The notes below the pieces were generated by a model. That model ran no database searches. It was not told the origin of the DNA and saw only the letters and a list, made by a program, of their open reading frames with translations. Source: Selaginella moellendorffii (taxonomy: Eukaryota; Plantae; Lycopodiophyta). From it: a DNA stretch of 64,000 bases. Shown piece by piece: positions 847-61,497 of the stretch. A program made the translations under genes and the position numbers. The stretch is from the NCBI RefSeq assembly GCF_000143415.4, contig NW_003314268.1, positions 1,658,672 through 1,722,671 on the forward strand. Direction: 5' to 3'. Position 1 is the stretch's first letter, and each line of letters begins with the position of its first letter.

Positions 847-1262
847 CATATAGAGCACCAACTCTATTTGCAACGCACTTCCACGAGCTCACCATTTCTA
901 TCATCAAGGTCCATCAGCTCACGGTCCCAGCAGACGTCCTCTTGTAGGAATCTCCAACTTTCACGTGAGTGCGCACATAGATCCCAGTTCCCGAAAGCTC
1001 ACAATACAAGGTACTCGCATATTTTCTTTCTAATGATCTGGTCCGTGAGTTTGTTTCCATGGCCCTTGTGAGCAGAGCTTCTGCATACACGTCGCGGAAT
1101 TTGCTTGATTTCCAGAATGCCTCGCCAAGTAAAAGGCTGCGGAGCTCGAAGACTTCTCGCCACAGGCGATTCTGGAAGATGATTTTCAAGGCTTTGGATT
1201 TCTTTGATATTTGAAAAATTGTCGCAGCTTGCCAAGCTTGGAAGTCAAAGGTCGGACATCTT
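847..1262 (+). pseudogene. Chimeric fragment: short MSH2 ATPase piece (APTLFATHFHELT) joined to an unknown gene fragment; inverted paralog of ~59400-59745
   Basis: gcaccaactctatttgcaacgcacttccacgagctcacc translates to the MutS motif LFATHFHEL. The downstream sequence matches the reverse complement of ~59400-59720. Confidence 0.7.
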
Positions 1263-1329
1263 CCAGTCAACATTGGAATGGAAGTACTCTCCAGCGCTCG
1301 GCTCTACAATTTAGGGGCAGAAAGTAGGA

Positions 1330-2036: not shown

Positions 2037-2039
2037 CCA

Positions 2040-7870: not shown

Positions 7871-9333
7871 CCCTTTTTCAAATGGCCAAGTATATGGTAC
7901 ATGTTCTGGTTTTTGGATAATCTATGCTACAACAGATTATGTGTCCAGAACTTCTGTTGAACAAACCACATAAATTGGTCACAATGCTGTAGAGGATGAC
8001 TATATTGTCATCATCCCCCAAAAAAGGTGCTAGAGTGCATAGACTTTCTATGGTAATTTATTTACCACATAATTTTCCTCCAATTTAAGCAAGACACTTG
8101 ATTGCAAATCTTACTTTAGGTTGATATATAGCCTATTCAATCTTATGGATTTTTTATTTTTTGACTTGGAAACACCTAAGCTCTTGGTTGCTCAAAAGCA
8201 TTGATCCTCCTCATTCTTTAATAACATAGTCATACTTGAGAGAATGTGAATTTGTTAGCTGTATCAGCTCATTTTCTTGTCACTTCCTTTTGACAATTTC
8301 AAAGTTCTCAATTGGTTTTATTGTAGATTGAATTCCAAGACCATCGAAACTTGAGCCCATCACCTCTATGAGCTTGTGACTAAGAATTTGTATTAATATT
8401 GTAGCAGATAAGCGTGCCATTAAATCTTCAAGATTTGGTTCATTTCCTATAATCTAGGCTTTTATATAAGCATGCATAAAAGTTTGTTGTAGAATAGAAA
8501 TGACCAAGTCATTCTAGCAAGCTTCAGATAGAGGTACACATTTAGAGCCACTTGTTTTTGCTATCCATATTGCATAATAACTCTTGGTAAAATTTGTTGT
8601 TGGAATTTGGGTAGCAATTGTTTCAAAACTCATTTACAATAGAAAAGCTCTATTTCGTTAAAGTGGGATTTATTCAGTAAAATGGGACTAGGTACAAATT
8701 TTCAAGTATTTGAAAATGACGTGAAATTATATGTTTTTTGTCCAGGGGCTAGACATATCTGGGGCATGGTGACTAGCGCGGTGACTTTGTGTCCAGACTG
8801 AGTCCATCTGGTTGTATAATAAATCTCATTGTCAAGGTGAACAAGCCGAATCTGAAGCTAAAGAAGAGCGATGGCATGCGTGCACACACTATTTGTTTGT
8901 TCATTGAGCGTGTGGTGAGCTTTCCAAGATGAACGTCATTCCTATTAGCCAGACATATAACTTAATGGTGAGAACATTTAGATATTATTCAATGTTATCT
9001 TTTTCTAACGAATCTAATTGTGAAGGTGTAGCAAGAGGCATTGCTAGTCTGGAGAAGTCATTTAACTCATTTGACCCTTAGTGTATTTTCATGAAACTAA
9101 ATAACATTCATATTATTAAGGAATTTCTCTAGTACCTTTTTTTTACGACATAGAGGCTTGCATTTCTTTCAAAGGTGATTTAGTAAAAGGCCTGAGGGCA
9201 CATGCCATTCTATTTCTCAGACCGGTATTAAGATATACTAGTGCAAAGGGCCACATGCCATCACGCCTCCTCTGATTCAGATTCGGATTGTTCACCTTGA
9301 AATAAAATACATTAGAAACTTAGTAAAGGAATA

Positions 9334-12300
9334 TTAATGAATCTCACCTTGAACCCGGGTTATGAATGCTCTTGCTGCATCTCTTGCATGGTCTGGCAAG
9401 GTGATGGTGGCACTCTGCTTCCGCATCCAACCATGCACAACATTATCCACCGATATGCTCATGCTGGGATCCCTTGGATTCAGCACCCATCTCTTTTCTA
9501 GGCAATCCTTCGTATATCCGGAACTTGGCTTGAACCACTCCACAGTTACATTGAAGGAGTTAGTTTCCGCGTCCTCCTCTGCATCAGTGATGCAGCGCCC
9601 CACCCATATCATTTGTTTTTTATTACTGGGTCTGACAAGCACGACCATTCCTTTGCAGACCTGTACTGGATTGAATGCTGAATCCGGCTTCTTGTTCCTC
9701 GGCCCACAATAGTGATCCTTAACATCGTTATCTGTCACTGCATTTCCAGAGGACATTGTTCCGCTACTATCTGGTGCTTTGGGTTCTGGCCAAAAGGACT
9801 CTTCCAATTCTTCATATACAACCGGCCCATTTTGGATAGCAGATATAATCTTCTCCCAGTATTCGAGCAAAGGCTTGCACCTCTTAAAATAGGATTCTCC
9901 ACCAAACACCAACCCCCTCTTCCAGAAGGCAATATGCTGTCTAATCCAGGCCACTATACTTTCCTGGTCTTTGAGTCCATCTGGGTGCATCGGCCATGGG
10001 GAACCCTGAGGAATCATAGGTTCCCCAGTTATGGGATCTCTCTTGAAGAGTTCAATGCCGTCCACTGGCAGCCACACTGTGTCCCATTCTCTCATCTTGT
10101 ACCTCATCACTGGAGCACCGTCACGCATGCTGAAATGAAACTGAAGAGGCTTGGAGTGGCCAATCAGCGTTTCGGATCCATCCCTGATGTAGCCTCTTAC
10201 AAACCCCTTAAAGTCTGGAACCTCTGTCACAAGTGCAGCTTCAACAGTGCCTTTGATGCAATTTTGGAATTCATCGTAGAGTTGTGGGAGGGTGAGGACA
10301 TTGGATCGCCGGAGGGACTCTGCCAAGTGACTGAACATGGCATCGACGTCTTCATGAGTGTGCCCAACCATGAGAAAGCCAAGTGTAACCGTTTCAAATA
10401 TGCCTTTGGCAACAAGCATCGCCAAGTACGTGAAGACGTACATGTTTTTGTTCTCACTGCCAGCATTGTCTGTTTGGAGCAGAAGATGGGGTGGAAGGCC
10501 ACATCGGCCGCAAGAACTTCCTTGAGATTCTGCTTCGTTTGGATGAGGCTGTGCATTCACCGGGCGACTAGCCTCGTCGGAATGGCATGATTATTCAGGC
10601 CATGAATCTGACGGCCAACATATTCACTGGGATGGCATGGGGCCCCACGCGATACTGCAAGCCTTTGCTCCTCCTCCAGCTGAACCCTGTATGGGGTTCG
10701 ATCGACAAGGGCCTTATGCAAGGGTTGGCCGTTCAGCTCAGTCTGCACACTTTGCAGAGACCTTAAGTGTTTTGCTAGGGACACAATCATCATGTTTGCA
10801 CCCCCGCCACCCCATAGAGGTACAAAGAAGTTCCCATAGTTCTGGGCACCATGCCCATGAGCGATTATGCCAAACAGAGACACAGGCAGCTGCATGGATG
10901 AAGAGATTGCCTTGGGGGCAGGATTGAGTCGAGGTAAGCACGTCTTTTTCTGGTCCATTTTGTCGTGGATGATGCAGAGGTAAGAGTCAGGTCTCTCCAT
11001 GGAGAGAATCCTGTTATGATAATATGCAGTCCTGCAGCTTCTCTGCTCGATGTTGTGGTCGAGCCGCCTTCTAACCAACGTCTCTCGCTCTTGAGCGCTG
11101 CAAGAATTCTTCGACAAAGCCATTTTGATAGCAGTGCACTCGTCACACTTTGAAAAGCTGGAGTACTTTCCTATACTCACATCCCTGAACCTGTTGCTCC
11201 ACAATCTACTAAATCTAGATTGGCTCAGCTTCCTGTAGCCATTACTCTGGAGTTCCCGATTCACATCTTCCAATATGGCCCCCTTGGTATACATGGAAGG
11301 GAGAACTCGTTGGGTGTCTCGTGTTCCATCTTCCAAGAGGCGGGTTTTATGTGGTTGCTGCTCGCTACATGTCTCGACAAACCTCTTGAAGATTGCCTCT
11401 CCATATACAACATGACCCCTGGTTTTGTGCGTACCGTCGTTCCCATGGACTGCCTGTTGAACCCTTTGTTCCTCGAACTCAGTTTTGATTTTGTAGAATG
11501 TGGTTCGAGGGACTCCATAAATGATTCTCCATGCCTTCATGCAGACCAAACCCCTCTGGAAGACGATGCCCCCCACCTGATGTTCTGAAGCATCAACAGA
11601 TGACCGTAATGCCTCATACACAAAATTGCAAGCTGCCTTCCAGGACAATGTCTTGTATCTTGCTCTCTCCTCTTCAATAGCATCCCAATCAGCATGTTGA
11701 CAGCACCTCCTCTTGCAACAAGCAACTGTCGAGACAATACGAACCTCCATCGCCATTTTCTGCCTTTTCGGTTCGTTGCTCAGATCCCTTTGGCTGCGCT
11801 GTAGGAAGGTGTACTTTCTTTTCCCATGAAGAGATGTTCTGTCATCAGTTGTAGTGGTGTTTGATTGTGAATCCTTCACATTCTCAAACACTAAATGCCT
11901 CAATTTCCACCGCACAATGCTTCCAATAGTCAGACTGTTTTCTTCTGTGTCAACAACCTCTAAAATCGCAACTCCAATATCATCCCAGCCCAATTCTTGA
12001 TTAGCAACCGCATCTCTTGGATCGACAACTGTGGCTAAGCCCTCAGCTACCACCTCCCCCTCGGGGTTGTTTAGAAACACCTTTGCCTGAATCCATGTAG
12101 CACGGTTCTTAAGATCCATGGAGGGAACATGCGTTGCACTTGCGCTGTCCCCAACATCTGCTTTCTTCTGCAGATTTTTCAAGGCAACAACAACATTTAC
12201 CCCGACGACCATCTCTCCTCGTTCAATAGCGACCACATTCCCATCGAAGATAGTCTCTACTGATACAGCAGCATTGCCTTCCCCAAGCCTTTGACAGTGT

Positions 12301-12395
12301 ATAACAAAGCTCCGATCCATAGACACAAGGGTCCCTTTTGCAACTCTCTTCCCACCATTCAAAATGTAAACCTTTTCCCCAACCCTGAAGGCCAT
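9334..12395 (-). CDS. DDE transposase (~1020 aa), frameshifted near 10590 in this copy
   Basis: Two N-terminal VAxG..L..VxV repeats resembling the En/Spm-associated domain, Cys motifs (CCKRRCC, FSKCDEC), HDKMDQKKTCLP, LLQTDNAGSENKN, FLMVGHTHEDVDAMFS, and a C-terminal beta-barrel-like region. Copy 2 reads through the junction in frame. Confidence 0.85.
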
Positions 12396-12583
12396 TCTGA
12401 AAGTGCAGAAAAGAAGTTAAGACCATACAAAAAATGATTGGAGAATGGCCTAAATCATAACATACCAAACAACCTCAATAGCATGAGGCCACATGCCATT
12501 ATTCAAACATGCTATTGACACCCACGTGAAATTTCGCATTCACAAAATTGGCATGAGCCCTCATGCCATTAGTGGTACCACTA

Positions 12584-12776
12584 ATGGCATGAGGCCTCAC
12601 GCTATCTTTGGCCCCTGCTAGCCTGTTGCTATATTCCTTTTGCCTTGTTGCAACTGTATATATTTTTGTGTGCGTGACTAGTCACCCATACGAGAAATAT
12701 ATACAGTTGCAGCAAGGCAAAAGGAATATGGCAATAGGCTAGCAAGGGCCAAAGATGGCATGAGGCCTCATGCCAT
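12584..12776. repeat. ~190-bp foldback upstream of the transposase ATG
   Basis: Arms pair around GTGACTAGTCAC (~12676-12687) and each arm ends in a 22-bp palindrome. Confidence 0.9.
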
Positions 12777-13224
12777 CTTGATATACACACAGTTGCAGGC
12801 AAGTAAAAACATACATGACAATACGCTAGCCATGAAATTGCAAGGGCCCAAGATGGCATGTGGCCTCATGCCATTTGTAAATGTGGTCCTAAACCATTCC
12901 ATGGTGAACATACCAGGAAGCACAAGTGCCGAATATCAAGAGGAAGCGGTAGCCACACCAAAGACAGTGCCGCTCGCAACACCGCAACTGCTTGTAGCGC
13001 CGCTCGCACAAACTGCCACTCGCATAAACTGCCGCTCGCACAAACTACCACTCGCATAAACTGCCGCTCGCAATGGCGCTCGCAATGCCGCAACCGCTTG
13101 TAGACGCATAAACCACAGCTCACAACGCCGCTTACACAAGCAGCGCTCACTGCGCTCAGCGGAACCAAGAACACGGCGCACAAAAATGATAGACCTAGGA
13201 ATGAGTTCGAGAATTCAAAAATAA

Positions 13225-15343
13225 CACACGCTTGAACGTCACATCAAATCCTCTGACAAACCAGATCTTATGATTCCTCTGACAAATTTCAAACTGAGTA
13301 GCTTCTAGACTTTGCTGTCGGAGGTTGAACTTTGTCACATCATGTCCTTGCCTCGATCCAGCTGTGCCATGTCAGTGATTCGAACTTTGCCATGCCATGT
13401 CAGCGATCCGCGCTAAGATTATTCGCCATGTAAAGGAATAATTATGCTGTGTGTGTACGTCCATTTATGGCAATATAAGGCCACACGCCATTCAAAGAAT
13501 AATGCTAGTCGAGCATTTTTTGGTGCATTTTTGGGTTCAAAATTGCATGAGCCCACACGCTATAAAGTTTACCTGTACCAAAAATAGAAACAGCTTTATT
13601 TACTTGGGAATTTAAGTGGTTGAGGCATTTTTAAACTTACAAACACATGCCCTACTTACATTCATTTGGTTACTTAAAATTCAAAAATATTATAAACCTT
13701 TCTTTTTGCATTTTCAATGTTTTCAATTATGGTTTTTGATTTTCGCAGGACCAGCCTAGTAATCTATTTGCATCCCATCATATTTATAGCTAGCTTTCGT
13801 TTGTCCCCTTCGCTAGCCTGAGATACATCTGCTCGGCATCTGCCTCTTACAGCATTTGCCCAGAAAGGGCATCTTTCTTCACGCAGCATTTGCCACATGT
13901 TTAGGGTTAGGGTTTAGGGTTTAGGGTTTAGCAATTCAGTAGCTTGATAAACATGCAAATACAGAACTTGATGCAAAATCCTTTGATATGTCACAATGCC
14001 CCTAGGACCATAAACACATTTCAATAGAGAGGGTCCTTTCATTTCATAACTCATTACGTAGATCTTGGTGAAACCAGAGTTAGTGAAGTTGGTTTCTTGT
14101 GATCCCGCATCTGATTGTGATGTCCCTTTGCAGTGTCGATGGAAAGGTCAATGCACACCAAACTGTAGAATCTTGGAGCAAAATAACGGTCGGATCTATG
14201 GCAAATGCCCCTGAAACATTGTAAGGCTCGTGTGGTCTCATGTGGTGTCCGATCGAGATGCTTCTTTGCAGGGTCATCAAGAAGGACATTGTATACCATT
14301 CTGTAAAATCTAGTTGCGATCTAACGGTTGGATCTCCAGGAAACTCAAAACAATCTCGCGCGTGTCAGAATATTCTAGGAATATACTCCTATGTGGCATG
14401 CGGCCCCACGCCATTCAAGAGATAATGCCATATGACGCCGAGCATTTTTTGGTGCATTTTTTGGGATCAAAATTGCATGAGCCCACACGCTTGAATGTCA
14501 CATCAAATCCTCTGACAAATTTCAAACTGAGTAGCTTCTAGACTTTGCTGTCGGACGTTGAACTTTGTCACATCATGTCCTTGCCTCGATCCAGCTGTGC
14601 CATGTCAGTGATTCGAACTTTGCCATGCCATGTCAGCGATCCGCGCCAAGATTATTCGCTGTGTAACTGCTCGGCATCTGCCTCTTGCAGCATTTGCCCA
14701 GAAAGGGCATCTTTCTTCACGCAGCATTTGCCACATGTTTAGGGTTTAGGGTTTAGCAATTCAGTAGCTTGATAAACATGCAAATACAGAACTTGATGCA
14801 AAATCCTTTGATATGTCACAATGCCCCTAGGACCATAAACACATTTCAATAGAGAGGGTCCTTTCATTTCATAACTCCTTACGTAGATCTTGGTGAAACC
14901 AGAGTTAGTGAAGTTGGTTTCTTGTGATCCTGCATCTGATTGTGATGTCCCTTTGCAGTGTCGATGGAAAGGTCAATGCACACCAAACTGTAGAATCTTG
15001 GAGCAAAATAACGGTCGGATCTATGGCAAATGCCTCTGAAACATTGTAAGGCTCGTGTGGTCTCATGTGGTGTCCGATCGAGATGCTTCTTTGCAGGGTC
15101 ATCAAGAAGGACATTGTATACCATTCTGTAAAATCTAGTTGCGATCTAACGGTTGGATCTCTAGGAAACTCAAAACAATCTCGCGCGTGTCAGAATATTC
15201 TAGGAATATACTCCTATGTGCTCCTGAAAATGGCATGCGGCCCCACGCCATTCAAGAGATAACGCCAGATGACGCCGAGCATTTTTTGGGATCAAAATTG
15301 CATGAGCCCACACGCTTGAACGTCACATCAAATCCTCTGACAA
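13225..15343. repeat. Imperfect tandem duplication (~825-bp period) in the intergenic centre of the transposon
   Basis: cacacgcttgaaYgtcacatcaaatcctctgacaa at ~13225, ~14484 and ~15309. The near-identical short ORFs 14054-14299 and 14879-15124 are 825 bp apart. Confidence 0.9.
13900..13931 (+). repeat. Interstitial telomeric repeat (TTTAGGG)n; shorter copy at 14738-14756
   Basis: tttagggttagggtttagggtttagggtttag read directly. Confidence 0.9.
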
Positions 15344-15975
15344 TTTATTTAGCTCAACATCTGGCATTTTTGGAAATACAAGATGCTTTGGAATATCCAA
15401 TCATGCATAGTATAAATATAGCGAGGGTATTAAATGATATCCCAATCATGATCTTTCTTTTGGATTTCGCGTGCATGCAGTCCGAGGAATGATGACGTTG
15501 CGGATTTCTTTTGGATTTCACGCATGCGCGCGCCGATCCAGAAATTAATGGTGGCGCCCAAGTCCGAGGAATGATGACGTGGCGGGATTACCAACCGTCG
15601 TGACATTTCGCGCGTGTGAGGTTAGGTTTTGCATTTTGCTTCGTACTCGCGCTCGCACACTCGCGCTCCCACTCGCGCTCCCACTTCTCTACAGGTTTCT
15701 CGTGTGCATTGGCGTCCACTCGTGCTTGCATCACACTCGCGCTCGCATCGCGCTCGTGTGCATCGGCGTCCATTTCAAGACACACCCAGTTTGTAACTTC
15801 GCCGCCAACTCCGTCGCCCACTCCGCCACCCACACGCAGCCCACTTGGCGTCCCGGGAGATTTCAGCGCCACTCTCCAACTGTAAGTGGCAGAGTAGCCT
15901 TGCTGCTACGATCCGCTGCACACACAGTGCACATTCGCCAGCGAGTCCGGTTGTCACGCCTCCATTCGGCTTCAA

Positions 15976-18900
15976 ATGGTAAGTCTTTTAGGCCAAGTAG
16001 AAAATGGCATGAGGCCACATGCCATTCAGTAGCAACATTGGCATGCACCGATTGGGCTCTCGAGTGCAGTCCGGTTACAGATGGCGTGTAGCCTCACGCC
16101 ATCTTAGGATGCAGCCTCAAGACATCTGATGCAGTGGTGAATGGCGTGTGGCCTCACGTTATTTCCAGCTACTAGCTTTTCATCTGTCAGCTCTAATTGT
16201 TGTGCATTTCTGAACAGGCGAGGAATTGCGTTCTTCTTCCAGCCACTGTCAATGTGGATGCAGAGAAGGGGGAGGAGCTCACCAGTTGGACTTTCGGGAT
16301 GGAAGGTGAGGATCTGAGGCTGTACAACACAGATGGTGGGAGAAAAGAATGCATGGGGATCCTCATCCAAGTGACAGACACTCCATGCAGTTCCATGCAA
16401 GAATATGGACTGGCACTTGTGGTAGAGACAGCGTCTGCCTTCAAGATCCACCTTGCACATCCTAGCGGCTTCCCGGAGGGGGGCAGCGGCTATGAGGAAT
16501 TCCTAGAGGGAGCTAGGGAGAGGTTGTCCAGGAGGCCCACAATTTCAAAGACGCTGCGGGTCTATGAAGATCACATGGAATCCACGGACCTCACCTACGG
16601 CGATGTTCAAAAACTATATTCCAACATTGAGCCGTTGAGAGTGACTCCAGTTCGCGAAGCAAAGGGGAAGGGGGTCGATCTGGAAACTACCTCGAAGCAG
16701 AAAAGGGTGGTCAAGCTCAAGCCAACGTCCGACTCTCCTGCTCCAAAAAAGAAGCTACTCAGTGATGCCATTGCCTCGGGTTCGAACACTACACCCACCA
16801 AAAAGAAGAGCCGCAAAGAGCAGAAAGAGCAAGAAGAGGCAGCAAAAATCGTCGCAGATAATAGTACTTGTTACTATTCCAACAAAGTATATACAATCAA
16901 CGTGAGCCGTATCGACATCCAAAGCAAATACAACCAAAGGCTAGTATCTGATGAGTGGGTGGAGAAATTGAAGCAGAAGATGCTGACAAGTCCAGTAACA
17001 CCCGACATCGCAGACGTGATCCCCTACTACCAAAAAATGAAGGGCGAGATGAGGTTTCCAGACTTGATCAATAGGAAGGTGTTGGACGATCAGAACATCC
17101 GGTTCTATGCCGTCTCCAGGCAGCATTCTAGCTTGGCGATGCAAGAGATAGTTGTGGATATTATGGTGGGCGAGGAGGTGAAGAAAGTCTTCAAGACAAG
17201 AGTTGTCCGCCTGATAAAAGGCAACTCGCCCCTCCGATCTATCATATACATCTCCCACGCGCAGAATGTCAAGCAAGAAACGTGCTACAAATCGGGTCTG
17301 CACGAGACATTGGCACGAACATGGAAGCTCTGGGTTCAACTGAAGAAGCCACAAAAACCAGGACAAGGACGTGCACTAGCAACTAGCGCCTGGCAGGTAA
17401 GCCTCGTTGTATGTGGCATAGCATGTGGCCTCACGCCATTTCCATTGCAGGAATTCTCGAGTCTTCTCTCGAAAACACTGGGGGTCAATGACACACTCAG
17501 CATCCATAACATTCTACTCGCGACAAAAGTTGTTTTTGACAAATGGGTAGATGTGCTGAGGAGGTACCATGACGGGGAGTTGCCAAACTCAATGGGTGTG
17601 GAGGACGGCCGGAAGCCCAATGATTTGAAGCTCAACGCCTTGCGTTTCTCGCGGTCTCTAGACGACGACGACCTTCTGACAGTGGCTAATGCTCTTCTAC
17701 GTGGTGAGGTAGTCTTCAACAAGACCAAAATGACTCCCGGCCATATTGTGACATACGAGGACTTGTGCACGACTCTGAGAGCTCGTGCGCTATTGAAGGA
17801 TTGGATCTTCGAGCAAGTGGCCGTGGAGAGGGTGAGCATCGACACCACGCAAGAGATGATGGAAGCGCTGGAGTTGTCAAATGAAGACATTGACGAGTAC
17901 GTGAAGGGGGCCCCCAAGTTCATCGATCTGCTGCGGGATGCCACGAAAAGTAAAGCTGAGAAGTTGGATCAGTATCCAAATTTCATTAAGATTGATGTCG
18001 ACCGCCGGCTTCAGAAACAGCTCGACCCCGCAGCAGAGGCCTATCAAGAACCTTACCGGGTATACTTGAATTCGGATGAGGATCAAAGGTGGAGGAGCAT
18101 CGTTTCCCGCGGAGATGAGCAGGTCAAGAACATCTTTTGTGTGATGGACTTCACAAACGAGGAGATCACTCATGCAGACGAAGTCAGCTCCATCATTGAT
18201 TTAATGGTGGGACTTGCGGAGGTGGAATCTTCAGTCCACTATATGATCTACGACTCCGAATCCTATCACAAGTTCTGGAAGGCCTTGAACGAGGTGAAGG
18301 CTCGGTTGAAAGGAAAGGAGATGCGGGAGATCCATGGGATAATGGCTAAGAAGAAGATACCGAGGAATGTCCGCATCTTCACACTCGCCCTTGTTATTGG
18401 TCCTGCAGCAGAGTGGGACTGGAGTGACTTCCCAGCTTCGTTCGACAAGGCCAATCGAATTGATCTGAGGGAGGTCAATTTACCCGTGCCTGAGGAACTG
18501 AAGACGGCTATGGAGCTTTCGAATCCAAAGAAAGCTCCAGGTGCAGCATGGGAAATGCTCAGCTGGGTCTTCAACGCAATAGCGGGTGGGTCACCTGCTT
18601 CCGACTCCAAGGGCAAATGCGTTGTTGAGTACAACTGCGGCGGACTATTCTTTCGAGCCGCACTACTCAAGGGTGTCCCGTGTGTTGCGGTGACAAACTC
18701 CATTGAAGAGGTGACTTCAATGGAGCATATAATTACAGTTGCCAAAGAAAAACAGTATCTTCTCTGCGAACTTGGTGAGTACGCACTTTAAGTTTAAATG
18801 TTATCTCACAAGCTCTGTATGCAGGAGCGTGGCCACCCCCAGATGCTGAAACGGCGTTAACAGCTACTGTTGAAGATACCCATGTTGGGCCGAGCTCACA

Positions 18901-21598
18901 ACCTGCACAAGGTAAGGTCACGTGAGGCCTCACGCCATTTTGATTATAGATCGTTGTGAATATTCAGACACGAGGACTGAAAAGCGCACTGGTGGCGCAT
19001 CGAAGAAGGACAAACAAACAAGCAATAGGAAAAAAGGAGGTACAAATTATATTTGCAATGGCGTGTGGTCTCATGCCATTCCTTGCAGGAGAAACTTCTT
19101 CAAAGGCAAAACAGGCAAGCACCAGCCAAGCTCAAACTGACAGTGGTCATAAAAAGCGAAAGCACGTTGGACAGTCGTCGAGATCAGAGGCGTTTGATTC
19201 GAAAAGGAAGAAGGGCAACGAAAAGATGATAGGTAATGCCTCGCGGTTATGGCGTGTGTGCTCATGCCATTCATTGCAGATCAAGGGCTGAGTGAAAGCA
19301 GGCAGTCACCACCTCATGACTCAGATTCCTATGGCGGACTCCCCTTCCCCAATCTCAATGGAGAGGTACAATGGATGAGGGAAGCTTTTCAAGTCAGGGC
19401 CACGTTTTTCTCATCTCGTCGTCTTCGAAGGGTGCAAGAACGTGCAGAAACCATGTTAAGACAGTCGGGTGAGGATACGGTCCTAGGTCACGCACTAAAA
19501 CAGGCTATGGATGTCTTGTATTTTGAGATGGAGACTCGGCCAGATGATTTTCCCAAGATGGTCCTGGAAGAACAAGCCATCCAGCCTGAGCAGCCTATGG
19601 AAGAAATGCATGAGGGGGATGAGGAGCCAGAGAAAGATAATGAGCAGGAAGAGCAGAAGGACGAAGAGGAGGACAAAGAAGAGGAGGACGAAGAAGAGGA
19701 GGACGAAGAGGACTTGGATGGTCCTCACAATGGTGACGATCACAATAACGACGACGACGATGATGACGACGATGGCCAGCCTGAGGTGGCCAAAGAGCAG
19801 CGGAGGAAGGTCATACAAGACAAACCATCAGGTAAATAATAATACATCCATTCCTAACCTTTTACCATTTCTAACATTGTCCATGTAGGTCGCAGAGCAA
19901 ATGGTAAGTAGAGATTATTCAGTTGAATTTACAAACTCTAGCCTTTAGTGTCGAGGAAGGATAGTGCCAAGCAAGGGTCGAAACGTATGTCCAATCCTTC
20001 AGAATCAGCAGTGCGCCCAAGTGATATCGGTCCTAGTTCCTCAATAGCAGTTGATGGTAAATACAGTATAGTCGATTCAATGTGCTAATGAGTTTGTTTT
20101 TAGTAGCACGGGAGGATACCATCTCAATCGAAGGGAGATATTTGGACATGCATATGGATCCGCCAGTGGACTCTACTTGGCTGCAAGAGTCATCAGAGCT
20201 GGTGGAGGCTACTATCCATATCAACGCCAAGCAAGCTGACCACGCTCCACTTGATGCTGCCCATACCACTAAGTCAATCTTGTCCACGTATCCAACTGAC
20301 GGTGACCAGGCGCCATTGGACCCACATGAGGCCGCCCCAGCCGCCGAGCCGGTCGTATCCTCATTTCCAACGGACTCAACGTGTGCCCAATCGTCTGACT
20401 ACGCGCCGTTGGAACCTCCCTACACCGCCCCTGCTGCCTGTTCGGTCATGTCCACTTTGCCAACGGAGGCACCAGCTGAAATGGCGTGTGATCACACGCC
20501 ATCGGAACCACCCCATGCCACTGTTGAGCCAGTTGTACCAGAGTCTACAGCTGAAATGGCATGTGCCCACACGCCATCGGATGCGATTGACCCCACATTG
20601 CAGAGGAGAGTATTTCCGCCCTTCACGTTTCCTCGACCAAAACCCTCTCAACGACCATCGGGAGCAACATTCGCTAATATTGTAGATGGTAAAATTGACT
20701 TGTACCATTTTTTATGCTGACGCATTTCATTTCAGAGTCACGGCGAAGGTACTGTATTGTTTTTGATCTGAACGGTGTCCTTTTCTCCCATGAGCGTGGC
20801 TCGTCCTCGAATGTCATTGCACCCTCCAAAGCCTGCGGTCGTAAGTTGGTCAAAAGAGACAGATTCACATTAATCACACAGGAGAAACTGCGGGATCTAA
20901 TAATGACCATGCGACACTTAAAACAGAGGGCCGGGTTCAATTTGCAATTGAGAGTTTGGACATCCATGATGCGCCACAATGCATTAACGTTGCTACAGAT
21001 GATGCACGATCAGACGCGAGTAATATTACCATTTGACTTTCTCCTAACGCAGGAGGATTGCTTGACTATGGTCCATGTGAGGGGTAGCAAGCCCATCTTC
21101 GTCAAGCCAGAGGCTGTAGTGATGAACCGGACTGCTAGCTCAAGTGAAATCCTCATCATCGATGACTCGCCGATTAAAACTGCAGCAAACACGCACACAT
21201 ATGCAGTGCACCCCATCTCTTGCAGTATGGAAACTAGGGAGAAGAAACCGTATGTTCTGGGGGACCTTGCAAAACGGCTTGGAGCGATGGTGATAGAGAA
21301 TCGGCCAGTCCAGGAGGTGGCTGCAGAAATCAACCAAATGGCAGATGGAACGGTATATCAAAAGCCATTTGATCGGACAGACACCAGTCATAATTTATGG
21401 CATGTATATTGTCTAGCCAAGCACTATCCGCATCTCCATAATCTGCTCAACCGGATGGGTTCTTCGACCACTGAACATGAGCGTGGACGTATTAGAGAAG
21501 AGATGGCATTACTATTGGGTTTAAATCCTGATAGTGTGGAGAGTGATGAAATTCCAAGATTATTGTATAGGCGTTGGAGGCAAAAAATAACAGTCTGA
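15976..21598 (+). CDS. Transposon ORF2, ~1643 aa in 11 exons: ParB/Srx-like + degenerate amino-MTase fold + acidic IDR + FCP1/SCP-like HAD phosphatase
   Basis: Exons 15976-15978, 16218-17396, 17451-18774, 18825-18911, 18968-19039, 19089-19232, 19280-19831, 19889-19903, 19949-20056, 20104-20688 and 20736-21598. All introns are GT-AG and phase-compatible, 4932 nt in total. Motifs: YNQR..FYAVS(R/G)QHS; KCVVEYNCGG..AALLKG..CVAV; IVFDLNGVL..VWTS..IIDDSPIK. The first exon is the least certain. Confidence 0.75.
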
Positions 21599-22559
21599 GA
21601 TGGCATGTATTTATTTAAAAATGTAACTTATTATGGCATGGGGTTCCATGCCATTGTATTAATATTAAAAGACAATTCTTTGAGAGGATTTGCATTATAC
21701 TAGAAGTGTTACAGCATGTTATTGGAAGTCTACGAAGTTGTTTTATTAATAATGGGAAAGTAAAGATTGAATGGGGACTTGGGCTCCACCTAGACTCGGA
21801 GCAACTGAGCCAATATTAAAAGGATGGAAAGAAATTGGACGACGATGACAAGGAGAAGAGAGAGGTGAAGCAGTGGCAGGGGGAGGAGAAGTGATTGAGT
21901 AGACATTTCCTTGTTTAAAATAAAATGGCATGTGCCTCAATGCAGTTGAATTTTGTTATATTTATATACTATATAAAGGTTTGGAAACCTTATTTTACAA
22001 GTGGGATAATGACAATTCCCACTTTAACGAAATAGAGCTTAGAAAGAGTATTAATAAAAATGATTAATACTAATATTTTCTCATTTGAGAAATAATTAAA
22101 GTCCACTAATGTGGAAAATGAATAAACCATTATACTAGCCAAGTCTATAGTCTTGGAATTACTTTCTCATAAATATTATCTCCAGCCCAGAATAAATGTA
22201 TGAACTTGTATTATTTTTTTGCATCTTCTAAAGTGTTTACAACTTTTAAACTCTAGCATAACTATTTATGCTTATCATAGTATTCAACTTGAATGCATTT
22301 TTCCATGTGTTCATATAAACTTTGCTCCTAATTGAAAAGGCAACTCCTCTCTCAACCAACTAAAGCCTTGTCTAGACCACCATTGTAGATAGTTTTAATA
22401 ACTTGTCAATTTACTTGTGCTTCATCACTCATAAAACTATAAAACATTAGTAGTGTTGAAGATCCTATTCTAATTTGGTATGTTTTATTTAATAATGTCT
22501 AAAAAAGAACTTGAGTTGGCGTGTCTTCTCCTTTCATCTCACAAACAACTATCACCATC

Positions 22560-33180: not shown

Positions 33181-33980
33181 GGATGCACTAGAATTAAGAT
33201 AAACATGATTTTTCTTGTAAGATATGTCTTGATTTTCCTTCATTTTAAGTATGTCTGAAGATCCAATAACAAGTGATGTTGTGATGATGATAGTGAGATA
33301 TCAAAGGAGAGAGTTGTCATTAGAAATGGAGTTGTTGATAGAAAAAAGATCCTTATGTGCTTTCTTTGGGTTTCATTCTAATTGGATTAAAATGTTATAA
33401 AGGGCTCAAGGTACAAGGTTGCTTTATGTTATAGTGATAGAGATTTCTTTAGGTGGAAAATGTATTTTGCACCAAATCTTATTGTAAAAGCAGAGTTTCA
33501 ACTAAAGGAGTTTATATAATGCAGCAACTTGGAGTAGAAAGCTCTATTTCGTTAAAGTGGGAATTGTCATTATCCCACTTGTAAAATAAGGTTTCCAAAC
33601 CTTTATATAGTATATAAATATAACAAAATTCAACTGCATTGAGGCACATGCCATTTTATTTTAAACAAGGAAATATCTACTCAATCACTTCTCCTCCCAC
33701 TGCCACTGCTTCACCTCTCTCTTCTCCTTGTCATCGTCGTCCAATTTCTTTCCATCCTTTTAATATTGGCTCAGTTGCTCCGAGTCTAGGTGGAGCCCAA
33801 GTCCCCATTCAATCTTTACTTTCCCCTTATTAATAAAACAACTTCGTAGACTTCCAATAACATGCTATAACACTTCTAGTATAATGCAAATCCTCTCAAA
33901 GAATTGTCTTTTAATATTAATACAATGGCATGGAACCCCATGCCATAATAAGTTACATTTTTAAATAAATACATGCCATC

Positions 33981-36900
33981 TCAGACTGTTATTTTTTGCC
34001 TCCAACGCCTATACAATAATCTTGGAATTTCATCACTCTCCACACTATCAGGATTTAAACCCAATAGTAATGCCATCTCTTCTCTAATACGTCCACGCTC
34101 ATGTTCAGTGGCCGAAGAACCCATCCGGTTGAGCAGATTATGGAGATGCGGATAGTGCTTGGCTAGACAATATACATGCCATAAATGATGACTGGTGTCT
34201 ATCCGATCAAATGGCTTCTGATATACCGTTTCATCTGCCATTTGGTTGATTTCTGCAGCCACCTCCTGGACTGGCCGGTTCTCTATCACCATCGCTCCAA
34301 GCCGTTTTGCAAGGTCCCCCAGAACATACGGTTTCTTCTCCCTAGTTTCCATATTGCAAGAGATGGGGTGCACTGCATATGTGTGCGTGTTCGCTGCAGT
34401 TTTAATCGGCGAGTCATCGATGATGAGGATTTCACTTGACCTAGCAGTCTGGTTCATCACTACAGCCTCTGGCTTGACGAAGATGGGCTTACTACCCCTC
34501 ACATGGACCATAGTCAAGCAATCCTCCTGCGTTAGGAGAAAGTCAAATGGTAATATTACTCGCGTCTGATCGTGCATCATCTGTAGCAACGTTAATGCAT
34601 TGTGGCGCATCATAGATGTCCAAACTCCCAATTGCAAATTGAACCCGGCCCTCTGTTTTAAGTGTCGCATGGTCATTATTAGATCCCGCAGTTTCTCCAG
34701 TTTCTCACGTGTGATTAATGTGAATCTGTCTCTTTTGACCAACTTGCGACCGCAGGCTTTGGAGGGTGCAGTGACATTCGAGGACCAGCCACGCTCATGG
34801 GAGAAAAGGACACCGTTCAGATAAAAAACGATATAGTACCTTTGCCGTGACTCTGAAATGAAATGCATCAGCATAAAAAATGGTACAAGTCAATTTTACC
34901 ATCTACAATATTAGCGAATGGTGCTCCCGATGGTCGTTGAGAGGGTTTTGGTCGAGGAAACGTGAAGGGCGGAAATACTCTCCTCTGCAATGTGGGGTCA
35001 ATCGCATCCGATGGCGTGTGGGCACATGCCATTTCAGCTGTAGACTTTGGTACAACTGGCTCAACAATGGCATGGGGTGGTTCCGATGGCATGTGATCAC
35101 ACGCCATTTCAGCTGGTGCCTCCGTTGGCAAAGTGGACATGATCGAACAGGCAGCAGGGGCGGTGTAGGGAGGTTCCAACGGCGCGTAGTCAGACGATTG
35201 GGCACACGTTGAGTCTGTTGGAAATGAGGATACGACTGGCTCGGTGGCTGGGGCAGCCTCATGCAGGTCCAATGGCGCTGGGTCACCGTCAGTTGGATAC
35301 GTGGACAAGATTGACTCAATGGTATGGGCAGCATCAAGTGGAGCGTGGTCAGCTTGCTTGGCGTTGATATGGATAGTAGCCTCCACCAGCTCTGATGACT
35401 CTTGTAGGCAAGTAGAGTCCACTGGCGGATCCATATGCATATCCAAATATCTCCCTTCGATTGAGATGGTATCCTCCCGTGCTACTAAAAACAAACTCAT
35501 TAGCACATTGAATCGACTATACTGTATTTACCATCAACTGCTATTGAGGAACTAGGATCGATATCACTTGGGCGCACTGCTGATTCTGAAGGATTGGACA
35601 TACGTTTCGACCCTTGCTTGGCACTATCCTTCCTCGACACTAAAGGCTAGAGTTTGTATCTTAATTCAACTGAATAATCTCTACTTACCATTTAATCTGC
35701 AACCTACATGGATAATGTTAGAAATGGTAAAAGGTTAGGAATGGATGTACTATTATTTACTTGATGGTTTGTCTTGTATGACCTTCCTCCGCTGCTCTTT
35801 GGCCACCTCAGGCTGGCCATCGTCGTCATCATCGTCGTCGTTGTTATTGTGATCGTCACCATTGTGAGGACCATCCAAGTCCTCTTCGTCCTCCTCTTCT
35901 TCGTCCTCCTCTTCTTTGTCCTCCTCTTCGTCCTTCTGCTCTTCCTGCTCATTATCTTTCTCTGGCTCCTCATCCCCCTCCTGCATTTCTTCCATAGGCT
36001 GCTTAGGCTGGATGGCTTGTTCTTCCAGGACCATCTTGGGAAAATCATCTGGCCGAGTCTCCATCTCAAAATACAAGACATCCATAGCCTGTTTTAGTGC
36101 GTGACCTAGGACCGTATCCTCACCCGACTGTCTTAATATGGTTTCTGCACGTTCTTGCACCCTTCAAAGACGACGAGATGAGAAAAACGTGGCCCTGACT
36201 TGAAAAACATCCATCATCCATTGTACCTCTCCATTGAGATTGGGGAAGGGGAGTCCGCCATAGGAATCTAAGTTAGGAGGTGGTGACTGGCTGCTTTCAC
36301 TCAGCCCTTGATTTGCAATGAATGGCATGAGCACACACGCCATAACCACGAGGCATTACCTATCATCTTTTCGTTGCCCTTCTTCCTTTTCAAATCAAAC
36401 GCCTCTGATCTCGACGACTGTCCAACGTGCTTTTGCTTTTTATGACCACTGTCAGTTTGAGCTTGGCTGGTGCTTGCCTGTTTTGCCTTTGAAGAAGTGT
36501 CTCCTGCAAGGAATGGCATGAGACCACACGCCATTGCAAATATAATTTGTACCTCCTTTTTTCCTATTGCTTGTCTGTTTGTCCTTCTTCGACGCACCAC
36601 CAGTGTGCTTTTTAGTCCTCGTGTCTGAATATTCACAACGATCTATAATCAAAATGGCGTGAGGCCTCATGACTTTACCTTGTGCAGGTTGTGAGCTCGG
36701 CCCAACATGGGTATCTTCAACAGTAGCTGTTAACGCCGTTTCAGCATCTGGGGGTGGCCACGCTCCTGCATACATAGCTTGTGAGATAACATTTAAACTT
36801 AAAGTGCGTACTCACTAGGTTCGCAGAGAAGATACTGTTTTTCTTTGGCAACTGTAATTATATGCTCCATTGAAGTCACCTCTTCAATGGAGTTTGTCAC

Positions 36901-39598
36901 CGCAACACACGGGACACCCTTGAGTAGTGCGGCTCGAAAGAATAGTCCGCCGCAGTTGTACTCGACAACACATTTGCCCTTGGAGTCACCCGCTATTGCG
37001 TTGAAGACCCAGCTGAGCATTTCCCATGCTGCACCTGGAGCTTTCTTTGGATTCGAAAGCTCCATAGCCGTCTTCAGTTCCTCAGGCACGGGTAAATTGA
37101 CCTCCCTCAGATCAATTCGATCGGCCTTGTCGAACGAAGCTGGGAAGTCACTCCAGTCCCACTCTGCTGCAGGACTAATAACAAGGGCGAGTGTGAAGAT
37201 GCAGACATTCGTCGGTATCTTCTTCTTAGCCATTATCCCATGGATCTCCCGCATCTCTTTGCCTTTCAACTGAGCCTTCACCTCGTTCAAGGCCTTCTAG
37301 AACTTGTGATAGGATTCGGAGTCGTAGATCATATAGTGGACTGAAGATTCCACCTCCGCAAGTCCCACCATTAAGTCAATGATGGAGCTGACTTCGTCTG
37401 CATGAGTGATCTCCTCGTTTGTGAAGTCCATCACACAAAAGATGTTCTTGACCTGCTCATCTCCGCGGGAAATGATGCTCCTCCACCTTTGATCCTCATC
37501 CGAATTCACGTATACCCGGTAAGGTTCTCGATAGGCCTCTGCTGTGGGGTCGAGCTATTTCTGAAGCCGGCGGTCGACATCCCTCTTAATGAAATTTGGA
37601 TACTGATCCAACTTCTCAACTTTACTTTTCGTGGCATCCCACAGCAGATCAATGAACTTGGGGGCCCCCTTCATGTACTCGTCGATGTCTTCATTTGACA
37701 ACTCCAGCTCTTCCATCATCTCTTGCGTGGTGTCGATGCTCACCCTCTCCACGGCCACTTGCTCGAAGATCCAATCCTTCAATAGTGCACGAGCTCTCAG
37801 AGTCGTGCACAAGTCCTCGTATGTCACAATATGGCCAGGAGTCATTTTGGTCTAGTTGAAGACTACCTACCACGTAGAAGAGCATTAGCCACTGTCAGAA
37901 GGTCGTCGTCGTCTAGAGACCGCGAGAAACGCAAGGTGTTGAGCTTCAAATCATTGGGCTTCCGGCCGTCCTCCACACCCATTGAGTTTAGCAACTCCCC
38001 GTCATGGTACCTCCTCAGCACATCTACCCATTTGTCAAAAACAACTTTTGTCGCGAGTAGAATGTTATGGATGCTGAGTGTGTCATTGACCCCCAGTGTT
38101 TTCGAGAGAAGACTCGAGAATTTCTGCAATGGAAATTGCGTGAGGCCACATGCTATGCCACATGCAACGAGGCTTACCTGCCAGGCGCTAGTTGCTAGTG
38201 CACGTCCTTGTCCTGGTTTTTGTGGCTTCTTTAGTTGAACCCAGAGCTTCCGTGTTCGTGCCAATGTCTCGTGCAGACCCGATTTGTAGCACGTTTCTTG
38301 CTTGACATTCTGCGCGTGGGAGATGTATATGATAGATCGGAGGGGCGAGTTGCCTTTTATCAGGCGGACAACTCTTGTCTTGAAGACTTTCTTCACCTCC
38401 TCGCCCACCATAATATCCACAACTATCTCTTGCATCGCCAAGCTAGAATGCTGCCCGGAGACGGCATAGAACCGGATGTTCTGATCGTCCAACACCTTCC
38501 TATTGATCAAGTCTGGAAACCTCGTCTCGCCCTTCATTGTTCGGTAGTAGGGGATCACGTCTGCGATGTCGGGTGTTACTAGACTTGCCAGCATCTTCTG
38601 CTTCAGTTTCTCCACCCACTCATCAGATACTAGCCTGTGGTTGTATTTGCTTTGGATGTCGATACAGCTTACGTCGATTGTATATACTTTGTTGGAATAG
38701 TAATAAGTACTATTATCTGCGACGATTTTTGCTGCCTCTTCTTGCTCTTTCTGCTCTTTGCGGCTCTTCTTTTTGGTGGGTGTAGTGTTCGAACCCGAGG
38801 CAATGGCATCACCGAGCAGCTTCTTTTTTGGAGCAGGAGAGTCGGACGTCGGCTTGAGCTTGACCACCCTTTTCTGCTTCGGGGTAGTTTCCAGATCGAC
38901 CCCCTTCCCCTTCGCTTCGCGAACTGGAGGCACTCTCAACGGTTCAATGTTGGAATATAGTTTTTGAATATCGCCGTAGGTGAGGTCCATGGATTCCATG
39001 TGATCTTCATAGACCGGCAGCGTCTTTGAAATTGTGGGCCTCCTGGACAACCTCTCCCTAGCTCCCTCTAGGAATTCCTCATAGCCGCTGCCCCCCTCCG
39101 GGAAGCCGCTAGGATGTGCAAGGTGGATCTTGAAGGCGGACGCTGTCTCTACCACAAGTGCCAGTCCATATTCTTGCATGGAACTGCATGGAGTGTTTGT
39201 CACTTGGATGAGGATCCCCATGCATTCTTTTCTCCCACCATCTGTGTTGTACAGCCTCAGATCCTCGCCTTCCATCCCAAAAGTCGAACTGGTGAGCTCC
39301 TCCCCCTTCTCTGCATCCACATTGACAGTGGCTGGAAGAAGAACACAATTCCTCGCCTGTTCAGAAATGCACAACAATTAGAGCTGACAGATGAAAAGCT
39401 AGCAGCTGGAAATAACATGAGGCCACACGCCATTCACCACTGCATCAGATGTCTTGAGGCTGCATCCTAAGATGGCGTGAGGCTACACACCATCTGTAAC
39501 CAGATTGCACTCGAGAGCCCAATCGGTGCATGCCAATGTTGCTACTGAATGGCATGTGGCCTCATGCCACTTTCTACTTGGCCTAAAAGACTTACCAT
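33981..39598 (-). pseudogene. ORF2 of copy 2 (ParB-like/MTase-like/FCP1-like), inactivated
   Basis: Collinear with 15976-21598. Frameshift at ~37865, stops at 37555 and 37297, DLNG>YLNG. Retains VSGQHS. Confidence 0.85.
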
Positions 39599-40157
39599 TT
39601 GAAGCCGAATGGAGGCATGACAATCGAGGCCGGACTCGCTGGCGAATGTGCACTGTGTGTGCAGCGGATCGTAGCAGCAAGGCTACTCTGCCACTTACAG
39701 TTGGAGAGTGGCGCTGAAATCTCCTGGGACACCAAGTGGGCTGCGTGTGGGTGGCGGAGTGGGCGGTGGAGTTGGCGGCGAAGTTACAAACTGGGTGTGT
39801 CTTGAAGTGGACGCCGATGCACATGAGCGCGATGCGAGCGCGAGTGTGATGCAAGCGCGAGTGGACACCGATGCACACGAGAAATCTGTAGAGAAGGTAG
39901 ATGAGCGCGAATGTGAGCGTGATCGCGATGCGAGCGCGAGTACGATGCAAAACCTAACCTCACACGCGCGAAATGTCACGACGGTTGGTAATCCCGCAAC
40001 GTCATCATTCCTCGGACTTGGGCGCCACTATTAATTTCTGGATTGTTGCGCGCATGCATGCACGTGAAATCCAAAAGAAATCCGCAACGTCATCATTCCT
40101 CAGACTACATGCACGTGAAATCCAAAAGAAAGATCATGATTGGGATATCATTTAATA

Positions 40158-43284: not shown

Positions 43285-43299
43285 TGAAGAAAAGTTAAC

Positions 43300-61460: not shown

Positions 61461-61497
61461 CCACAGTTTCTCGATTTCGTCCTGAATTTTCTCTCAG

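Follow-up and report, generated by a model that had tools for sequence, protein, structure and literature searches.

A Sola1 transposon of Selaginella moellendorffii with a probable ParB-like accessory gene and dispersed palindromes as candidate binding sites

Introduction

A 64,000-nucleotide stretch of the genome of the lycophyte Selaginella moellendorffii (contig NW_003314268.1; hereafter, the window) holds, at positions 8645-22040, one nearly complete copy of a 13.4-kb cut-and-paste DNA transposon of the Sola1 superfamily, the transposase of which is frameshifted. We are highly confident that this Sola1 element carries an accessory gene, ORF2, for a protein with a ParB-like and a methylase-like part. 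One 22-bp palindrome recurs along the element, clustered in the bidirectional promoter region, placed singly in four of five ORF2 mini-introns, and otherwise scattered; in related families, the palindrome sequence varies, and its placement relative to the genes is kept. Our reading of the whole, to which we assign a probability of about 0.55, is that an ORF2-type factor acts on these palindromes to mark the element as its own. The coordinates of all features are collected in Table 1.

The element and its two copies

The copy at 8645-22040 (copy 1; 13,396 bp) is bounded by terminal inverted repeats (TIRs) of 27 nt that are 96% complementary and perfect over the outermost 24 nt. This 24-nt terminus has four matches in the window against none expected, which reveals a second, inverted copy of 13,287 bp (copy 2) at a separation of 11.5 kb. 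The two independent insertions are flanked by 4-bp target-site duplications (TSDs), AGAA for copy 1 and TAGA for copy 2, and the first-pass annotation of this DNA, which had reported 24-nt TIRs and 4-bp TSDs on two insertions, was right on both points. A 6-bp duplication can be read at copy 1 but is incompatible with copy 2, so the TSD is 4 bp. Within the TIRs and the outermost ~200 bp at either end lies a terminal motif, AAGTGGGA/AAATGGGA, that differs from the palindrome, which is absent from these regions.

The two copies are 97-99% identical across 603, 2,830, and 6,644 bp and diverge only in the center (12077-15427 in copy 1 versus 40158-43299 in copy 2). The center of copy 2 is an unrelated 3.1-kb sequence that is in part very rich in AT (27% GC in 42-44 kb), and this replacement took out the 5' end of the transposase gene together with the promoter-region palindromes; part of it (40170-40607) is similar to another repeat at 49950-50387. 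Copy 2 is damaged elsewhere too: its transposase has two CGA>TGA stops as well as upstream frameshifts, and its ORF2 is broken. Transitions account for 79% of the differences between the copies, 28-42% of the differences lie in a CpG context, and C>T and G>A changes are in excess in copy 2, a substitution pattern consistent with the decay that is usual for silenced transposon copies with methylated cytosines. In the non-coding center of copy 1, a tandem duplication of ~830 bp (13829-14522 versus 14667-15346, 93% identical) has one palindrome and a short telomere-like GTTTAGG run (e.g., 13899-13931) in each unit. A search of the whole window against Rfam gave no match to a known RNA family.

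The transposase and membership in Sola1

The transposase gene of copy 1 is split into two abutting open reading frames (ORFs), 12395..10557 (612 aa) and 10560..9334 (408 aa), by the loss of 7 nt at ~10605, and copy 2 holds both parts in one frame. Given this deletion and the stops and frameshifts of copy 2, both transposase copies are defective, and their ancestor had ~1,020 codons. The second ORF matches the Pfam family DUF7869 (E=7.8e-40), and we recovered 22 homologues of the transposase. Those at 30-44% identity belong to metagenomes, to the liverwort Calypogeia fissa, to the alga Heterosigma, and to a mussel.

For a direct comparison with a curated member of the superfamily, we took the transposase sequence of Sola1-1_Ec32 from the supplement of PMC12477816 and compared the two proteins by eye over the core DN..ENKN...MVGHTH..D. 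The window core, TDNAGSENKNMY...TVTLGFLMVGHTHEDVD, and the Sola1-1_Ec32 core, VDNTVAENKNNY...TVTLCFMMVGHTHIQID, are identical at 28 of 56 positions (~50%, counted by eye). This match, together with the 4-bp TSD recorded for Sola1-1_Ec32, supports the Sola1 assignment; the first-pass label of a Sola1-like transposon thus stands on the TSD, the TIRs, the DUF7869 match, and homology to a curated family member. A candidate acidic triad, assigned by alignment alone, consists of the aspartates of IIHDKMDQ, QTDNAG, and HTHEDVD, which are kept in the homologues and in Sola1-1_Ec32 (MMDGANQ, VDNT, and HTHIQID). Sola transposases have reportedly been described with a DDD catalytic triad.

The N-terminus of the transposase (11796-12395, minus strand) contains two tandem beta-rich modules of ~50 aa with the pattern VGxxVxL...VAxG...LG...V, which match no Pfam family, are kept in the homologues at loci L001 and L006 and in P0018 and P0019, and have a look-alike near the C-terminus (9400-9700, minus strand). 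We rejected an N-terminal DNA-binding domain common to the transposase and ORF2, for which the only match is 16 aa long (LGWxDIGV), with E=0.003 in a single pairwise comparison, and the hhalign probability is 0.3. A 16-aa stretch of the transposase N-terminus (LGWDDIGV...) recurs in the N-terminus of one ORF2 relative, P0026.

The palindrome in the window

The palindrome ATGGCRTGNGGCCNCAYGCCAT (consensus ATGGCRTGnGGCCnCAYGCCAT) has 34 matches at three or fewer mismatches, 20 in copy 1 and 14 in copy 2. The two copies together account for all 34, shuffles give an expectation of 0.00, and the 37 kb of window DNA outside the copies contains none. Several more degenerate copies exist besides, in fair agreement with the ~25 sites along the whole element that the first-pass annotation had counted. 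Across the 40 half-sites of copy 1, which read ATGGC(A/G)TGnGG, six positions vary little or not at all, the spacer is free, and the only variation seen often is A/G at the CpG position, an alternation that is probably part of the methylation-type decay described above. The 7-nt deletion that splits the transposase of copy 1 (10581-10605) falls inside a palindrome, of which copy 2 keeps the intact version, ATCACGTGAGGCCTCATGCCAT, at 44769-44799; its position indicates that the palindromes are prone to deletion.

The accessory gene and a third gene

The unspliced reading frame of ORF2 is 864 aa long (16197-18791). Once five GT-AG mini-introns are removed, one frame stays open over 1,134 aa and ends at 19839; without splicing, each frame across 18775-19839 contains 8-24 stops. 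Four of the five mini-introns hold exactly one palindrome, which ends 9-11 nt before the acceptor, and these four resemble one cassette, a palindrome followed by CCATT...TTGCAG. The splice-site hexamers are retained in copy 2 for four of the five introns, the acceptor of 19233-19279 reading TTGCAA there, and the 17397-17450 insertion is unique to the window in the alignment of ORF2 relatives.

In the predicted protein, a ParB/Noc-like domain (~aa 210-400) is followed by a helical region, then by a degenerate N6/N4-methylase-like domain (~aa 620-860), and finally by a basic/acidic tail. A word-indexed protein search with the 864-aa frame found no relative, and one with the domain alignment found a single fragment that was already known; an exhaustive HMMER search of 1.84 billion representatives returned 13 matches at E <=1e-3, ~10 of them genuine. 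We used a 12-sequence alignment to build an AlphaFold model, in which the predicted local distance difference test (pLDDT) has a mean of 55, with 55-92 in residues 220-600 and 55-82 in the ParB-like domain. The best Foldseek matches of this model in the PDB are structures of Noc, 7nfu_A (probability 0.97), 7nfu_B, and 7ol9_B (probability 0.94), with E-values from 6.5e-3 to 3.3e-2 and template modeling scores of 0.32-0.44 to the target. The ParB-like nature that the first-pass annotation had proposed is thus weakly matched at the level of fold by the ParB family; our label 'ParB-like' is based on this weak fold match, on the motif (S/D)GQH(S/T)xxA common to ORF2 relatives (SRQHSSLA in the window), and on agreement with the published Sola1 protein discussed below.

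The methylase-like part is recognized by the string '(H/N)PxxKP ... (V/I)LDFFSG' of ORF2 relatives, the C-terminal signature of N6/N4 DNA methylases; the pattern common to the relatives at loci L001 and L007 is '(H/N)PxxKP...(V/I)(L/V)(D/E)(F/Y)xxGG'. The region of the SAM-binding motif I (FxGxG, after HPxxKP) is recognizable but degenerate, and reads NPKKAP...VVEYNCGGLFF in the window, HPGSK...VLDFFSGGVF in L001, and NPFAKP...ILDFFSGEQV in L007. These two independent relatives also align to positions 139-208 of 221 of the Pfam profile N6_N4_Mtase (PF01555), with E-values of 5.4e-4 to 1.6e-3 and 18.9-20.4 bits, below the cut-off of 26.7. At the place expected for the catalytic motif IV, (D/N/S)PP(Y/F/W), located by eye, the window reads IFCVMDFTNE, that is, DFTN instead of DPPY, and the relatives read DLRR, DATT, and DSAN, so that, judged from these sequences, the domain appears to have lost its catalytic DPPY motif. 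Searches with tblastn of the methylase-like and ParB-like parts of the relatives against 50,697 phage genomes found no match.

Downstream of ORF2 lies ORF3. Its N-terminal half is proline-rich and contains the palindromes at 20481 and 20556, and its C-terminal half is a NIF/FCP1-like phosphatase domain that narrowly passes the Pfam cut-off for NIF (PF03031; E=8.3e-5, 22.8 bits against 21.8, profile positions 1-126 of 160). The catalytic motif reads FDLNGV against DxDx(T/V), and the replacement of the second catalytic aspartate by asparagine makes an inactive or substrate-binding role of the domain likely. Recognizable splice sites are absent around the two palindromes (20481-20502 and 20556-20577), and if that region is exon, both read ...AEMAC(D/A)HTPS... 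in the protein. We could not join ORF2 to ORF3 via one intron, as no acceptor in 19870-20200 yields a continuous frame. The element therefore probably has three genes rather than a transposase and one accessory gene of ~1640 aa, as annotated at first: the divergent accessory gene is real, its predicted frame is 1,134 aa long, and the remainder belongs to the separate 489-aa frame of ORF3.

Layout and palindromes in related families

The only full-length ORF2 relative, P0034, is encoded on a 56-Mb chromosome of GCA_046195345.1 (locus L001). A transposase homologue with 27% identity lies at 5000-3234 (minus strand), and the ORF2 homologue, at 9332-14259 (plus strand), starts 4.3 kb away. The divergent transposase/ORF2 layout of the window thus recurs at 24-27% protein identity, which identifies the accessory gene as a true component of the element rather than a one-off capture. 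L001 has a palindrome of its own, with 44 copies of the core GGGACGCGTCCC within TCATGGGGACGCGTCCCCATGA over 974-14580, where shuffles expect 0.33, and with arrays at 7476-7637 and 10970-11178 that have a period of 28 nt. Both ends of its palindrome region (88-127 and 16286-16325) carry TTT(C/A)(G/A)GT-N4-5-ACAGTGGAACCTGGATAATT, which resembles the window terminus CTATTTCGTTAAAGTGGGA; we also found a 20-nt inverted repeat there and the motif TTTCGT-N4-5-AGTGG, related to that of the window, near both ends. A clean TSD was not seen for L001.

A third family is represented by locus L007 of Calypogeia fissa, which has an ORF2 homologue and 14 copies of yet another palindrome, GCCTCGAGAnnnTCTCGAGGC, against 0 expected, with arrays at 10499-10624 and 13149-13949 that have a period of 35 nt; no transposase was found within 10 kb of this ORF2 homologue. 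The first-pass annotation had named co-variation of motif and protein in related families as a check, and the outcome is positive: the palindromes of L001 and L007 do differ from that of the window. In all three families, a palindrome or array follows right after the ParB-like exon: at 17418 in a mini-intron of the window, at 10970-11178 between exons in L001, and at 10499-10624 in an intron implied by the annotated protein in L007. This combination of changing sites and kept placement is the pattern expected of cis sites that co-evolve, at the DNA level, with a trans factor.

Palindromes also accompany Sola1 transposases at loci with no detected ORF2. The metagenome contig L005 has 18 copies of CACGGGTGwwCACCCGTG with a ~50-nt period, L006, from Calypogeia and interrupted by a long terminal repeat (LTR) retrotransposon, has seven copies of CACGAACCATGGTTCGTG, and five metagenome contigs of 4-5.5 kb from a scan for the transposase core (L009-L013) carry GGCTCAAACnnnnGTTTGAGCC or CCTATGGCTAAGTGGCCATAGG on the upstream side of the transposase. 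Wherever a Sola1 locus includes upstream sequence (the window, L001, L005, L006, and L009-L013), a palindrome cluster lies within ~1 kb of the transposase start. At 933-1319 of L005, 8 kb upstream of the transposase, eight perfect copies of its palindrome follow one another at 53-nt spacing and may belong to another or a non-autonomous copy. We looked for TIRs and TSDs in L005 and L006 and found none.

A proposed mechanism and its alternatives

We propose that the palindromes, which are probably protein-binding cis sites, would be bound at the DNA level by a dimeric, sequence-specific protein encoded by the element, most likely the ParB-like product of ORF2. This protein probably derives from a prokaryotic fusion of ParB and an N6/N4 DNA methylase whose catalytic DPPY motif has apparently been lost. 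Binding would mark the element's own DNA and would bring methylase-like and phosphatase-like effector domains to the chromatin or transcription machinery of the element; the outcome may be regulation of the element or the countering of host silencing. The lack of palindromes at a Selaginella ORF2 relative that is without the ParB part and is surrounded by host genes (P0023, described below) counts in favor of this proposal. The step from candidate sites to ORF2, rather than the transposase, as their binder is tentative, and we put it a little short of an even chance.

Several points weigh against this proposal. The introns of ORF2 are predicted from sequence, its structural model is weak at a mean pLDDT of 55, and the best Foldseek E-value is only ~7e-3. 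The ParB domain has no significant match in Pfam, NCBIfam, PHROGs, or PDB sequence searches: the best ParB-type profile scores, from one family member each, are E=0.22 for the PHROG 'ParB-like partition protein' and E=0.14 for DUF6551, and PDB sequence searches with ORF2, the ParB-domain profile, and the NIF ORF gave 0 matches. Canonical ParB binds cytidine triphosphate (CTP) through an arginine-rich GERRxRA box; this arginine/CTP motif is absent here, with (S/D)GQH(S/T)xxA at its position, and ParB-style loading and sliding are therefore unlikely. The methylase-like domain of the window ORF2 has no Pfam match at all, and AlphaFold modeling of aa 600-864 gave a pLDDT of 48.7 with meaningless Foldseek matches, a result so poor that the methylase-like fold is without structural confirmation. 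Finally, palindromes are present in L005 and L006, where a hidden Markov model of the ORF2 domain detects no homologue within 10 kb, and upstream of the transposase in L009-L013, on contigs too short to judge ORF2; binding by the transposase would explain such loci equally well. Hence, of the trans-factor and cis-site system put forward by the first-pass annotation, the parts are as claimed, but the assignment of the palindromes to ORF2 is less secure.

These same transposase loci without a detected ORF2 make the transposase a serious candidate binder. According to this alternative, the palindromes are sites of the Sola1 transposase, either subterminal or internal sites at which the transpososome would assemble or operators by which the transposase would regulate its own promoter, and the ParB-like protein has another role or target. 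The cluster directly upstream of the transposase start, kept through at least six different palindrome sequences, fits such a role, as do the sites on both sides of the transposase gene in L005 and L006, which resemble subterminal repeats. We nevertheless hold this alternative, the main rival, to be a possible but unlikely one. The element termini carry AAGTGGGA/AAATGGGA and lack the palindrome; the sites of the large elements fill the whole interior, including the ORF2 introns, which is unusual for transposase sites; and the 14 palindromes of L007 surround an ORF2 homologue that has no transposase within 10 kb. The absence of ORF2 is, moreover, not established for L006, which is broken by the retrotransposon, nor for the short contigs L009-L013, and the test for a DNA-binding domain common to both proteins was negative.

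It is improbable that the palindromes have no dedicated protein partner and are self-spreading or structure-driven, as hairpin- or cruciform-prone mini-repeats or introner-like cassettes amplified by slippage or gene conversion. Such an origin would suit the tandem arrays of fixed period (28 nt in L001, 35 nt in L007, and ~50 nt in L005), the cassette-like appearance of four ORF2 mini-introns, and the instability shown by the 7-nt deletion inside a palindrome. Against it, the window has no copy in its 37 kb outside the element, six half-site positions are near-invariant with a free spacer, and the sequence differs by family as the gene-relative position stays; near-invariant half-sites and kept positions suggest recognition by a co-evolving factor rather than passive spread.

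That ORF2 is a host gene captured once, with no role in the biology of the element, is very improbable: its Selaginella relative P0023 (locus L002, GL377575.1, 9983-11425) does sit between the ordinary host genes ArfGap and VQ with no transposase and no palindromes nearby, but the divergent layout recurs in L001, palindromes accompany ORF2 in a third family too (L007), and the Sola1 element of Ectocarpus has the same arrangement (PMC12477816). P0023 itself shows homology to ORF2 in the helical and methylase-like parts, is missing most of the ParB-like domain, and may be a domesticated or relic fragment.

Relation to known systems

The first-pass annotation knew of no eukaryotic cut-and-paste transposon with this gene set, a claim that is refuted for the gene layout by the brown-algal Sola1-1_Ec32 of Ectocarpus (Genome Biol 2025, PMC12477816), a 21.5-kb element with an opposite-strand gene for a 1104-aa protein that combines ParB-like and DNA methyltransferase parts. 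Its authors suggest that this accessory protein binds and modifies its own transposon; for the family, they record a 4-bp TSD with a bias toward A as its last base and, as best match, Sola1-1_PPa, a Repbase entry from moss (PMC12477816). The element of the window agrees with Sola1-1_Ec32 in its transposase core, in a 4-bp TSD ending in A, in giant size (13.4 versus 21.5 kb), and, by the published description, in the opposite-strand ParB-like and N6/N4 methylase gene (1104 aa versus a predicted 1134 aa here). It differs in its host, a land plant rather than a brown alga, in TIRs of 24-27 bp against 282 bp, in a methylase-like domain that is seemingly catalytically degenerate, and in the extra NIF-like gene; the text of PMC12477816 does not mention palindromic sites.

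A second precedent is the PAG3 gene of Plavaka transposons (CACTA/EnSpm-type) in the red alga Bostrychia, which encodes an N-terminal ParB domain and a 2-oxoglutarate (2OG)-dependent oxygenase (bioRxiv 10.1101/2025.02.11.637652; Curr Biol 2025). Across Plavaka families, PAG3 is adjoined by tandem inverted-repeat arrays, which are proposed as its sites on its own transposon (bioRxiv 10.1101/2025.02.11.637652). Both systems join a DNA-binding domain that is ParB-like to a domain of nucleic-acid-modifying type and have inverted repeats near the accessory gene, which in the window are the cluster at 16004-16162 and the sites in the ORF2 introns, as in transposon-borne ParB-type systems. The Plavaka elements belong to another superfamily, however, with an oxygenase instead of a methylase-like domain and with adjacent arrays instead of sites dispersed in promoters, introns, and the whole element. 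The gene set is thus already known for Sola1, and the idea of ParB with inverted repeats is already published for another superfamily. A literal and incomplete literature search, which did not extend to the entries of Repbase and Dfam, found no description of dispersed family-specific Sola1 palindromes, of their conserved placement, including accessory-gene mini-introns, of palindromes upstream of the transposase in all sampled Sola1 loci, of the apparent loss of the methylase catalytic motif, of a NIF-like third gene, or of occurrence in land-plant lineages.

Two further comparisons are with systems of more distant origin. (i) Bacterial ParB and Noc have as their cognate sites (parS and NBS) palindromes of the 16-bp class in several copies. 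ORF2 resembles them in its best fold matches and in the multiple palindromic sites, but lacks a profile-level match, a ParA partner, and the CTP box, which is replaced by (S/D)GQH(S/T), resides in a eukaryotic host, and would not be expected to serve partition in an integrated transposon. With the phage and plasmid fusions of ParB and N6/N4 methylase (PF02195 + PF01555), it shares the domain order and HPxxKP and VLDPFxGSG-type motifs that are recognizable in the family; it differs in scores below the Pfam threshold, in the replacement of DPPY by DFTN, DLRR, DATT, and DSAN, and in having no match among the phage genomes searched.

(ii) In Arabidopsis, the VANC proteins of VANDAL (Mutator-like) transposons are reportedly anti-silencing factors for which loss of DNA methylation has been demonstrated. 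VANC pairs with short family-specific motifs that are not palindromes, frequently form tandem amplifications in the non-coding parts of the element, and evolve in step with the protein. The window element likewise has an accessory protein and family-specific motifs; it shows no sequence relationship to VANC, its sites are palindromic, and its function is here only a guess.

Feature map and surroundings of the element

Table 1. Features of the Sola1 element in the window (window coordinates; introns are predicted).
Feature	Position	Strand	Remarks
Copy 1, left TSD	8641..8644		AGAA; directly adjoins left TIR
Copy 1, left TIR	8645..8671	+	27 nt, outer 24 nt exact; begins AAGCTCTATTTCGTTAAAGTGGGA
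Palindromes of copy 1 (20)	9187..21654		starts at 9187, 10632, 12478, 12548, 12584, 12755, 12853, 13542, 14393, 15230, 16004, 16081, 16141, 17418, 18917, 19058, 19249, 20481, 20556, 21633
Sola1 transposase gene	9334..12395	-	~1,020 codons; no intron detected
Five-palindrome cluster	12478..12874		80-480 bp upstream of transposase start codon
Central non-coding region of copy 1	12875..15999		palindromes 13542, 14393, 15230; 16-nt tandem repeats; ~830-bp tandem duplication; telomere-like GTTTAGG run
Three-palindrome cluster	16004..16162		just upstream of ORF2
ORF2	16197..19839	+	six predicted exons, 1,134-aa frame
ORF2 mini-intron 1	17397-17450	+	54 nt; palindrome 17418-17439
ORF2 mini-intron 2	18775-18824	+	GT-AG unit
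ORF2 mini-intron 3	18912-18949	+	one palindrome
ORF2 mini-intron 4	19040-19088	+	one palindrome
ORF2 mini-intron 5	19233-19279	+	one palindrome
ORF3	20082..21598	+	489-aa frame once 47-nt intron 20689-20735 removed
Copy 1, right TIR	22014..22040	-	pairs with 8645-8671
Copy 1, right TSD	22041..22044		AGAA; directly adjoins right TIR
Copy 2, inverted	33539..46825	-	TSD TAGA; 14 palindromes; more decayed

The surroundings of the two copies are rich in repeats (3481-4149, 28013-28777, 22560-23475 / 31257-32163 / 49148-49945, and 60745-61638). They include fragments of retrotransposon Pol and gag (Pfam Pol_BBD and Retrotrans_gag), a ~0.9-kb repeat present three times, and a fragment of MutS domain II/III on the minus strand.

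Significance

To our knowledge, transposon accessory proteins that recognize their own element are rare, with VANC as the only well-studied case, and they are mechanistically informative. ParB-type accessory proteins in algal transposons were first noted in 2025 (PMC12477816; bioRxiv 10.1101/2025.02.11.637652). The window extends the Sola1 layout with a ParB/methylase-like gene to a land-plant lineage and supplies two near-identical copies with clean ends. Its concrete candidate binding sites, and three distant families in which the palindromes differ and their positions are kept, are material for a test of protein-site co-evolution, and the palindrome-in-mini-intron arrangement is a way for a transposon to hold cis sites inside its own genes.

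In its most far-reaching form, which we consider doubtful, the proposal is that Sola1 elements possess a self-recognition module that co-evolves within families: a dimeric ParB-like adaptor and 20-40 cognate palindromes at fixed places, in both promoters and in the introns of the adaptor gene, would deliver a methylase-derived pseudo-enzyme domain and a phosphatase-like partner only to the chromatin of the element, as a counterpart of ParB/parS for epigenetic or transcriptional self-marking. If this is true, the presence of a single site in a mini-intron, at a fixed spacing from the acceptor, is an adaptation and not an accident, and sites in the introns of the adaptor gene would leave its coding sequence undisturbed. 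If the binding itself is true, the pair of protein and palindrome would be usable as an orthogonal DNA-targeting module.

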